Shown here: in pieces, positions 59,337-63,307 of the stretch
Layout: each line of letters starts with the position of its first letter
Position numbering within the stretch: the first letter of the stretch is position 1
Source of the DNA: Monocercomonoides exilis PA203
Lineage: Eukaryota > Protista > Preaxostyla
Assembly (NCBI GenBank): GCA_001643675.2
Contig: LSRY02000019.1
Location: 1,240,001 to 1,304,000, forward strand
DNA length: 64,000 nt
Direction of reading: 5' to 3'
Notes under the pieces: generated by a model
What the model was told of the DNA's origin: nothing
The model's input: only the letters and a program-made list of their open reading frames with translations
Database searches by the model: none
Position numbers and translations under genes: made by a program

Positions 59337-60002
59337 AACTTTAAAAAAGGTTTCTTCAAGGGATTAAGTGTTTGTTACAGTGAACTTAGCTCCATTAAAG
59401 AAATAGCTCTTCTCATTGTTTTAAAAGATAATTAATAAAAGAGATATTAGTGATATTTTTTTCTTGTTGAATGAAAAAAAAATTTCGCAATTTCTATTTC
59501 ATAATTTTTTATCAATTTCAAGGAAATTGCTTCAAGTTGTGCAAAATGATAATTTCGTTCTGAATTTCAAAATTTTTTTGTTTTTCATTTCATGTTAATA
59601 ATTATCTTTATTGAAAGCACTCTCTTTTATTGTTTTGATTATTGGTGATTATTAATTTCAACAAAAATAAATAATTTTTTGAAAAATGACTTTATTAAAA
59701 AAGTTGAATCTAATAAATTTTTCTTTTATCACGTTTTTTTTTTTTTTCCAAAATAACAGATTTGCTTTATTAATAAAAACTATGGCTTTTTGAAAACAAA
59801 AACAAATTTTTTATTACAGTTTTCTGAAATGTTAATAAAAAATCCTTCGTTCTTTGTTTGCATTCCAAAATTTTCTCAAGATTGTTTAACTTTAGCAAGA
59901 AATCGAGAAAGAAGTGGGTGATTATTTTTGATATCACATTTAAGCCTGGGTGACGTGAAGAAAAAAGTTTGTCACGTCCGTCACCAGTTTTCCACCCTCA
60001 CG

Positions 60003-60047
<45 letters not shown>

Positions 60048-60084
60048 AGAAGAAGAAGAAGAAGAAGAAGAAGAAGAAGAAGAA
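60003..60084 (+). repeat. A43 followed by (GAA)13 polypurine tract
   Basis: Seen directly, 60 bp inside the left end of the element. Confidence 0.95.
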
Positions 60085-60341
60085 GGAAAGGAAAGATGCA
60101 GATAAAAAAAATAAATTTTTTTATTTATTGTTAAATTCAGCATTTTTTTTCCTTGTGTAAAAAAAATTTGAAATCATAAATCCCATTATAATATGATAAG
60201 GAAATAAAGCTGGTTTGTTCAAAAATCAAATGAGAAATGCATGTGGATGATGATGGTGCGGGCAGAGCCCTCTCATTGCTTTTTATAATTATTCTTTAAC
60301 CTGGAATAGTTGAACCTTAACATAAGCTCATCCAATATTTA

Positions 60342-61800
60342 TATGAAACAACATAGTTTTCTTAATGCAATTGCATTATTAACGATCAGATTAAGAACGT
60401 AACTGAAAAGTTCACTGGTTTGCATCCATTGCTGCATTTGAATTTTTGGTTATTGCATTTCGTTCTATCTTTTATTTTTGAAGCATTGTTTGATGGAATT
60501 GAAGAGTGCGATGAGGAAGAACAAATGCAGAGAATCAAAGAGCTGAATGAAATGGTTTATGAAATGGATGAAGAAGAATTCGAATCAGTTTTAACAAAAG
60601 AACTGTTCAATTAAATTGATGATATGATTGAAAAAGAAAAAATGTCAACGAAAATACAATTTTTCTATTGAAGCATGTTGGATATTGCAAAGTACCGAAC
60701 CGCATTTTGGATTTTGCATTTAATGATTCTTTTTTGTATGATCGATTTCAGAAAATGATCATAAAAGAAAATGAGAAAAAAGAAGAAAAGAATGAAAGAT
60801 TGGTGCTTGGTGTATGCAAATGCTACTCAATGCTTCACAGTTATATATATTTTTGTGAGGAATTACTTTCAATCTGTGTGTCTTGCCTTTTGATAACAAC
60901 TTTGAATAAAGATGAAAGCAAAGAAGCATTTAAAGAAGTAAAAATGGCTTTATCTGCTTTGAGAAGCGTTGATGGCTGCAATGTTTGCTCGTTTTCTCTT
61001 TCTTTTTGATGTTTTTGTTATTTTCTTATATTTTTTTAACAGAAAATTGCAAAAGAACTTTTCTGGGATGAAATCAAAGAAATCATCAGATAACGCCAGC
61101 AACATCATAATCTGACACGGCTTGCGCTTCTGTCTACTTGGAAGATTTTGATAGAAGGATTTGGTATTGATCAAAGCCTTAAAGGAGAGATTGTGAATGA
61201 ATTGCATTTCACGAGAGAGGCATCAAAAACATTGAAAGAGCTGATGGAAAAGCATATTGGAGGAGAGAAAAAGAAGAGAAAAATGAAGGAAAAGAAGTGA
61301 AAGAAGAACTTGTTTTATTGAAATGGATCCAAAAAGTTTGAACTACATTTTCTCTTTCGCTTATTGTGGAGCAAATAATTTATTGGACTTGTTCACAGTG
61401 CGTTCAGGTATTTCGAGCATCAAGGGATTCCAACAGAATGGTAAGCAAGAATTGCATTTTTTTCTTGAGAAATGCAGCGGAAGGCAAAAATGTGAATGTT
61501 GAAGACTTGCTCAAAGGAGGAGCTATTGATGCTGTATTGGAGGAAATGAATCAATCAACGTTGAACGAAGGTGTGGCATTTGAAAGCTTTCTCTTCTTTT
61601 TGAATATTTCAAGAAGACTGAAAGAAGAGGAGGAGGATGAAAAGGAAGAAGCAAATAAAAAGGAAACAAAAAGGAAGATATTTGAAAAGATGGAAGAAGA
61701 AGGATATGAAGATATCATCTCAAGCTTTCATGTTATTCTTGATTATCTTTTCAAAAAATTTAATCGTTATTTGACTTTGAAATTTTCGATTATTTTGTGA
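60342..61800 (+). pseudogene. Decayed member of a Glu/Lys-rich alpha-helical protein family (resembles a highly expanded Monocercomonoides family)
   Basis: Colinear ORF pieces (TEKFT|ALFDGIEECDEEEQ.., LLKHVGYCK.., HHNLTRLA.., LLKGGAIDAVLEEM..KRKIFEKMEEEGYEDII) are interrupted by in-frame TAA stops (60612, ~61090) and frameshifts; two GTTTGC..AG introns. The start position is approximate. Confidence 0.7.
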
Positions 61801-63307
61801 ATTCTCGAGGAATTGCTTTGAGTCTAATTACTCAAAAATGGCATTTTTCCATTTTCATCATTTCGTTAAAATAGAAAACATTCATTTTATTCTTTAAAAG
61901 CGACTGTTTTTCATTATTTCAAAAAAAAAAAAAAAAGAGAGAGAAACGATAACAATATTACAAAGCTAAAAATATTATTAATAAATGAATAACATTCTCA
62001 TTTTCATAGATTCTTCAGAGACATTTTCCTTAAATGAATTGAAACTTTTATCTTCTTCAATATGTTTTAATTTGAATTATTCTTTTCATTACTATTATTC
62101 TCCTGATGGCTCAACTTCTTCAATAGCAATTTCAACACACCCTGATTGAAAACCTTCGCCTGCTGTGCCCACAAACAAAAATTTTATTCACTTTATAAAA
62201 GCAAATGTGAATCTTATTGGTGATCTTGGTATTTAAAAATAACTTTTTTTCTGTAACGTCACATACGGTTCCGAATGAGTGCAAAAAATTGTCGAAAGAT
62301 GGTTTTTAATATAAATAAGTTTCCTCTTTTTCCGATGAAAATTGTCGTATCACATGAAGCGAAGACTTTGATGAGTTTATCGAACAAAAAATTATCCAAC
62401 AATGAAAGCTTCGAATTTTCTTCTTCGAACATTCAGAATTTTATATTAAATCAATGAGCATTCTTCAGCATCATTTTGAGATTTGTATTCAGTTCTTTCA
62501 TAAAAATATGAGAATTTCCAATATTAATTAAAATTGTAATGGTTGTGGGAACAGTAAATAATAAAAGCTTTCAAATAAGAAATTTAGCTTGTTTGTTTTG
62601 ATCTTCTGCTCCTTTTTATGCTTCATTTATATAATGACTGTGTGTGAAGCCAAAAGTCACTGACGTCAGTGATTTGTCAAAATTCCGATTTTCGCTTGCA
62701 CGTCAGTGAAAATTTCATAATGGAAAATTCGATATTTTCAATTTTCCAAATAAATTATTTTTGAAAACATTTATTATAAAGAAACTTTGAAATAATTATG
62801 TTGGTTTTTTGTTGTGACGTGGAAAAGACTGTCACGTTCGTCAAAAATCGAAAATGTCACGTCAGAAGTCAGCACGTCACCCAGGGTTAATCACATTTTT
62901 TCATTCAAGAGATTCAGTTCGAAAATATCCCTTGAATATCAACAAAATAAAACTGAACAGAAAAAAGGCTAATTCAAAAATATCTTAATCTTTATTTGGA
63001 CTTAACATTTGTTTTGATAGTAGTTTTGATAATTCAACAATTCAAACACAAAGTCTCTTCCCAATGACAAACAACGTTTGAAAAATTGACACTCCGAAAA
63101 AAGTTATGATTTCAAAAATACACACCCATATCAGTTTTTGTTTTTATTCAAGTGAAGAAACATCAAAAATCAAAATTATTGAAATTTTTGTTAAATACTT
63201 TTTTTCTAATTGAATTAATTGATCTCTCGGATCATTCACTGGAAGAAAAACAACCAATTTTAATCTGAACTTTTTAATAGTTTTTTTTAAAAATTGAAAA
63301 TAAACAT

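Follow-up and report, generated by a model that had tools for sequence, protein, structure and literature searches.

Near the end of a 64,000-nucleotide stretch of the Monocercomonoides exilis PA203 genome (contig LSRY02000019.1, positions 1,240,001 to 1,304,000, or C13:1240001-1304000; hereafter, the window), two short inverted repeats enclose a decayed, intron-containing gene. The locus raises the question of which kind of transposon this is, how it came by the gene, and whether such elements multiplied the large gene family to which the gene belongs. An earlier note on this DNA had read the locus as a piggyBac-like Pack-type element that served as the vehicle of that gene family. This study searched the whole assembly (82.3 Mb, 101 contigs). 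The results revealed that the element is very probably a nonautonomous member of the hAT superfamily carrying a host-type gene, which, taken as a whole, is the best explanation of the locus.

A repeated transposon with 8-bp target-site duplications

The element occupies positions 59941-62889 of the window (2949 bp) and ends in 17-bp terminal inverted repeats (TIRs). The left TIR (end A, 59941-59957, plus strand), identified through motif match and pair alignment, reads TAAGCCTGGGTGACGTG, and the right TIR (end B, 62873-62889, minus strand) reads TAACCCTGGGTGACGTG on the minus strand. Both contain the 13-nt core CCTGGGTGACGTG (59945-59957 on the plus strand and 62873-62885 on the minus strand), which has no third match in the window. 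Searching the genome for this core with at most one mismatch yielded 95 forward and 98 reverse matches, whereas the reversed control yielded 7 and 10, that is, approximately 190 against 17. Among the 100 exact core matches listed, we identified at least 33 inverted pairs, which were 0.7-11 kb apart and mostly 2.8-3.3 kb apart. The core motif is a genuine repeated transposon end occurring mostly in inverted pairs, as the genome search proposed in the earlier note had anticipated. The family consensus of the TIR is TA(A/G)(C/G)CCTGGGTGACGTG (17 bp), and the starts of 58 ends comprised 30 TAGCC, 18 TAACC, 8 TAAGC, and 2 others.

We then scored 8-bp duplications with the TIR start set at TA(A/G)(C/G)CC. 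Perfect 8-bp direct repeats surrounded 24 of 31 TIR pairs, and 7 of 8 positions matched in 2 more pairs; the octamer varied from copy to copy, and the chance probability of a single 8/8 match is approximately 2e-5. In the window, the octamer ATCACATT is present at 59933-59940 and, identically, at 62890-62897. The four bases outside the core plus one base were not constant, being CTAA, TTAA, CTAG, TTAG, ATAA, GTAG, or ACAG at 30 loci. The TTAA of the window copy is accidental and consists of the last T of the duplication and the opening TAA of the TIR. The inverted repeats that the earlier note had described are therefore real, but the TTAA that it had taken for the target duplication belongs to an 8-bp duplication with variable outer bases.

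The insertion site was identified by its paralogues. An uninterrupted copy of a miniature inverted-repeat transposable element (MITE) in locus L045 (4689-4953) is colinear with the left flank joined to the right flank of the window element and contains the octamer once. In at least 40 further scored MITE copies, which were 79-96% identical, the match was continuous across the equivalent insertion position. The window element is inserted approximately 25 bp inside one MITE copy, the first 25 bp or so of which lie at 59916-59940 and the rest at 62898-63130. The MITE itself is approximately 265 bp long, has inverted ends of approximately 33 bp starting with GGGTGATTATTTTTGAAA, and has more than 1000 first-look candidates in the genome. 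We had also considered whether the right flank of the window element was what is left of a transposase gene; this was rejected, since the flank is this MITE, which is also present inside the transposase region of L045.

A sister copy on contig C2 is 96.9% identical to the window element over its full length and is flanked by its own duplication, AATATTAC. Like the window copy, it starts with TAAG at end A, where, according to the earlier note, the G in place of C may have immobilized the window copy. Of 29 complete copies, 7 start with TAAG at end A, as do at least three solo ends; their duplications all differ, and the copies concerned fall in different subfamilies. Because it occurs at differing duplicated sites, the G variant was competent for transposition.

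A hAT transposase between the same ends

No transposase homology was detected in the window copy; the superfamily was assigned through relatives with the same ends. The element L036 (C35:317922-324919, 6998 bp) has these ends and a perfect duplication, ATTTTTTA. It carries a transposase frame of approximately 940 codons, which runs inward from end B and is broken by only three in-frame stops. An 11-kb element at C47:2085800-2096871 has the layout of L036 and, in addition, contains a nested copy belonging to the same family. Homology between the two elements is unbroken from the TIR through the start of the transposase, and the transposase is therefore the family's own. On C14, C38, and C47, further close homologues of the transposase (65-76% identical) are located at a distance of 5-8 kb from solo TIRs, coordinates that suggest that the C14 and C38 elements also bear a transposase.

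The C-terminal piece of the transposase in L045 (4375-4698, minus strand) matched PF05699, the hAT dimerization domain, with 25.8 bits (Pfam cut-off, 21.4), and the piece from L038 scored 16.7 bits, below that cut-off. A profile of the family transposases (A2) matched chains of the Hermes hAT transposase with an E value of 7e-6 in the same C-terminal region. Single pieces of the transposase matched nothing in PDB sequence searches, and a word search with a related 918-aa transposase returned only two matches, which were uninformative.

Several loci near this transposase were set apart. L003 (C1:1445256-1448268) has an end-A terminus and, approximately 1 kb further on, a piece of the transposase's N-terminal part that shares 93% identity with the L038 piece; its transposase is oriented opposite to that of L036, it carries no copy of the enclosed gene, and it is a rearranged copy. 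At L038:3564 to approximately 7540 (C47), a nested hAT copy of the same family, approximately 4 kb long and with the degenerate TIR cores CCTGTGTGACGTG and CCTGAGTGACGTA, directly follows the last transposase codons of the 11-kb element. The 7.6-kb L045 was rejected as a single element combining the enclosed gene and the transposase; it is a composite, in which only 5 of 8 octamer positions match and the stretch next to end B is present twice. A 9-kb TIR pair on C2 (L031) was likewise rejected as an autonomous element, for the intact transposase of 919 aa within it comes from another hAT, 6 kb long, which is bounded by TIRs (TAAACCTTTGCGACAC) and a duplication (GTTTACGC) of its own and is nested in a 3-kb shell of the window element's family. 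This second hAT family (L031:538-6530 on C2, approximately 1489359-1495351; also L033, L034, and L042) has 6-kb elements with the TIRs TAAACCTTTGCGACAC / TAGGCCTTTGCGACAC, an intact transposase of 919-924 aa, and a 327-aa open reading frame with weak protein-kinase matches. Over 6 kb, its copies share 94-95% identity, and each is flanked by an 8-bp duplication not shared with the others; the family looks young and is possibly still active.

The enclosed gene and its protein family

The gene carried by the window element (hereafter, the cargo) is a full-length pseudogene at 60477-61802 on the plus strand, covering profile positions 1-420 when the family profile was compared with the three frames. 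It retains a 60-nt GT..AG intron at 60983-61042, between profile positions 167 and 168, and approximately 390 bp lie upstream of it. In-frame stops were found at 60612, 61091, and 61339, together with approximately three frameshifts near 60650, 61290, and 61780. Some of these frameshifts could be homopolymer errors of the Oxford Nanopore Technologies assembly; the stops are not. The earlier description of a decayed, intron-containing gene for a Glu/Lys-rich helical protein was borne out by the profile match, the stops, and the retained intron.

The cargo was searched exon by exon, one exon at a time. Its terminal exon is 57% identical to MONOS_9338. All 162 protein matches to the family (length window, 134-425 aa) were MONOS_ proteins, none with a Pfam domain for the family; judged by these matches, the cargo family is known from Monocercomonoides exilis only. 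Neither the Pfam search with cargo pieces nor the PDB sequence search with the family profile returned a match. The AlphaFold model of a 424-aa family member was all-helical (pLDDT 88, pTM 0.84), and a fold search with this model revealed designed armadillo-repeat proteins and importin-alpha as the best PDB matches (E 4e-5, TM 0.42-0.48). The model suggests that the cargo family forms an armadillo-like solenoid, a likeness of fold and not proven membership of the ARM family. One M. exilis protein of 213 aa (P0004), named 'TSET complex, TPLATE subunit B' at NCBI, is 56-58% identical to family members and belongs to this orphan family; its TSET/TPLATE name looks doubtful, more like an annotation error or a fragment model.

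History of the cargo within the element family

Of 29 complete elements, 27 showed cargo homology, in each case on the plus strand and at a distance of approximately 500-1850 nt from end A; the remaining two, of 664 and 1805 bp, are short deletion derivatives. Of five solo loci with end A, four also had the cargo, among them the end of the C14 element with its apparent transposase, and it occupies the same position in L036 and in the 11-kb C47 element, both of which bear the transposase. In all element copies, it is decayed, with only short open reading frames left. This shared position, transposase-bearing copies included, indicates that the capture would predate both the diversification of the family and the loss of the transposase, and that the cargo was probably inherited rather than captured privately by a nonautonomous element. 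These findings fit one old capture. Of the earlier Pack-type reading, the nonautonomous state and the gene in the transposase's place hold for the window copy; a cargo private to the nonautonomous element does not, because 27 of 29 copies share it.

A terminal-exon tree was constructed from 18 element copies and 50 annotated proteins, using single-exon translations with X at stops; the tree is unrooted. A tree constrained to unite the element copies was not rejected in the approximately unbiased (AU) test (p-AU 0.70), from which five very gappy or long-branched element rows were omitted, and it was better than the free quick search (FastTree was also run).

The cargo of the window copy is a mosaic. 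The right 0.9-kb noncoding part of the window copy and part of its cargo match the siblings L043, L044, and L037 with 85-93% identity, whereas other cargo segments show 56-72% identity. One tract at 56-72% is 61291-61590, in the terminal exon, with 85-93% sibling identity on either side; it is probably the product of gene conversion. After the sister copy, the best match of the terminal exon is a free locus at C7:1156917-1157357 (84%), and the siblings fall outside the top 40. The best explanation of the mosaic is probably ectopic gene conversion, in which element copies and free paralogues would have exchanged sequence.

These observations can be arranged into a tentative history. An ancestral element that still had its transposase would have taken up one genomic copy of an intron-bearing armadillo-like gene beside end A. 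The captured copy would then have been inherited at the same position by the whole family, with or without a transposase, as a pseudogene in each copy examined; the 3-kb forms, including the window copy, lack the transposase. As the family suggests, a hAT transposase acting in trans would recognize the 17-bp TIRs and the subterminal repeats of the GACGTGAC type, and the element would be excised and reinserted with duplication of 8 bp of the target; the window copy would have landed in a MITE in this manner. Ectopic gene conversion with free paralogues may later have overwritten part of the cargo.

Relation between the elements and the gene family

The approximately 190 TIR ends correspond to approximately 90 elements, compared with 1043-1360 first-look loci of the gene family. 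Among the 40 best-scoring cargo matches, 6 lay in TIR pairs; the other 34 loci, which we term free, had no exact TIR core within several kb. Open frames, the longest of 426 aa, are present in at least 160 annotated members of the family. The annotated members are clustered on few contigs, which suggests local duplication. On this evidence, the host gene family of approximately 1000 loci did not arise from the element family, and the earlier suggestion that the element was the vehicle of amplification is not supported, given the count of elements against loci and the absence of exact cores near the 34 free loci.

Weighing the alternatives

The reading of the window element as a nonautonomous hAT transposon with a captured host-type gene has several points against it. 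The search brought up no intact transposase for this clade; every relative with at least 65% identity has stops or a truncated frame. The hAT catalytic core, an RNase-H-like DDE fold into which an all-alpha domain is inserted, was not recognized in Pfam and PDB sequence searches, in which matches were confined to the C-terminal dimerization region, and the AlphaFold model of the related intact 918-aa transposase was too poor to use (pLDDT 35). A preference for nTnnnnAn targets was not apparent in 23 perfect duplications (position 2, T in 12 and A in 10; position 7, A in 9 and T in 10). This preference, of the Ac/hobo/Hermes type, is a trait of some hAT clades only, and its lack therefore does not exclude hAT membership. 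The exclusion of TIRs near the free loci covers exact cores only. The cargo tree is poorly resolved, and a single capture is no more than compatible with the data. Assigning the element to piggyBac, as a Pack-like element whose target duplication is TTAA and whose termini are CCC...GGG, would account for the TTAA letters flanking both ends in the window copy, but the outer tetranucleotide varies among copies, the duplications measure 8 bp at 24 of 31 pairs, and a hAT transposase is encoded by relatives that share these ends. The piggyBac DDE domain PF13843, which would mark the transposase that the earlier note had proposed to look for, had no match in the 82-Mb genome; this is weak evidence, as the control genomes were silent too, and the transposase between these ends is hAT-like. 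Membership of piggyBac is extremely improbable, the variable outer bases and the 8-bp duplications having refuted it. That two unrelated solo ends enclose a host pseudogene by chance borders on the inconceivable and is refuted as well, given the perfect 8-bp duplication, the uninterrupted paralogous site, and the 97%-identical full-length sister copy with its own duplication elsewhere.

Other alternatives concern the role of the gene. Amplification of the armadillo-like family by the elements, with most members descending from transposed copies, would agree with the presence of a family member in nearly every element and with the exchange of sequence between element-borne and free copies. It is nevertheless very unlikely; besides the excess of loci over elements, the lack of an exact core within several kb of any of the 34 free loci, and the clustering that suggests local duplication, the element copies are all pseudogenes whereas at least 160 annotated members are open, and the element copies are compatible with one clade. 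The gene may instead be a functional accessory gene of the hAT lineage, from which, in the extreme form, the host family would descend. Its completeness (profile positions 1-420, with approximately 390 bp upstream), its fixed position in transposase-bearing copies too, and its retention through the family's diversification argue for such a role. However, all 29 copies of it have decayed, even where the transposase is best preserved; no trace of purifying selection was observed, and the tree, being unrooted, does not give the direction of descent. Moreover, hAT elements are not known to require a second protein, which also counts against an accessory gene, and we consider this reading improbable. 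There is an outside chance that the approximately 90 element copies serve as mobile donors and acceptors of sequence in conversion with the approximately 1000 free paralogues and thereby shuffle this orphan gene family, or that the gene once served the transposon. A nonautonomous hAT element carrying a captured host-type gene remains our preferred reading of the window copy.

Other features of the element

Inside end A, a subterminal region with the motif GTCACGTCCGTCACC (59958-60002, plus strand) is conserved family-wide and is followed by an A-run and then a (GAA)n microsatellite (60003-60096). The end-B subterminal region (62661-62872, minus strand) contains repeated TGACGT / GACGTGAC motifs, presumed transposase-binding sites, which are concentrated in the subterminal regions of the element family. 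Between the cargo and end B, the noncoding internal region at 61830-62760 (0.9 kb) is restricted to this element subfamily, with seven copies at 80-96% identity and two at 68-69%, and no coding signal was detected in it. Rfam and tRNA scans of the element returned no match.

Comparison with known systems

The likeness to piggyBac is confined to an accidental TTAA beside a C-rich end in the window copy alone. Unlike piggyBac, the family has no constant TTAA, an 8-bp duplication, a transposase of a different family, and a TIR starting with TA(A/G), and the superfamily is accordingly corrected to hAT. Like Ac/Ds, hobo, and Hermes, the family combines an 8-bp duplication, short TIRs starting with TAG or TAA, subterminal short repeats, and a C-terminal hAT dimerization domain. 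It differs from the classical hATs in its very divergent transposase of approximately 940 codons, of which only the C-terminus is recognizable, and in showing no nTnnnnAn preference. hAT TIRs are approximately 10-25 bp long and begin with TAG, CAG, or TAA; their usual consensus has G as its fifth base, where the M. exilis family has C.

The M. exilis genome paper gives 4.5% DNA transposons and 35% unclassified repeats and leaves this element family unnamed, and the authors raised the suspicion that gene families that had expanded were being counted as repeats (PMC8767320). The present family shows repeats and expanded gene families intermingling, since most of the transposon body is a gene-family member that probably recombines with free paralogues. 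This has a bearing on repeat masking, gene counts, and the dating of such families; the origin of the armadillo-like gene family is not explained by the element. The case is an ordinary one of transposon gene capture, and it adds an example from a protist, an oxymonad, to a literature in which the examples that we found come from plants and fungi only.

Pack-TYPE elements, as outlined by Gisby and Catoni (2022, PMC8903248), are nonautonomous elements that capture and shuffle coding DNA, with Pack-hAT elements in maize and rice. The window copy resembles Pack-hAT elements, going by that outline, in being a nonautonomous TIR element with 8-bp duplications and an interior of host coding DNA. Unlike the Pack-TYPE pattern, a whole intron-bearing gene appears to have been captured once, with the transposase still present, and then inherited family-wide. 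A closer parallel is offered by Pseudocercospora fijiensis and related fungi, in which the account of Dhillon et al. (2019, PMC6710886) describes a complete hAT with a captured histone H3 whose copies multiplied and were all inactivated. Going by the same account, the two systems share a captured host gene that multiplied with the transposon and was inactivated in all copies. The fungal cargo described there is a single-copy housekeeping gene that repeat-induced point mutation (RIP) has inactivated, whereas that of M. exilis belongs to a family of approximately 1000 members and carries ordinary stops and frameshifts. In contrast to the fungal case, the M. exilis cargo would still be exchanging sequence with its free paralogues, and the host is an oxymonad protist.

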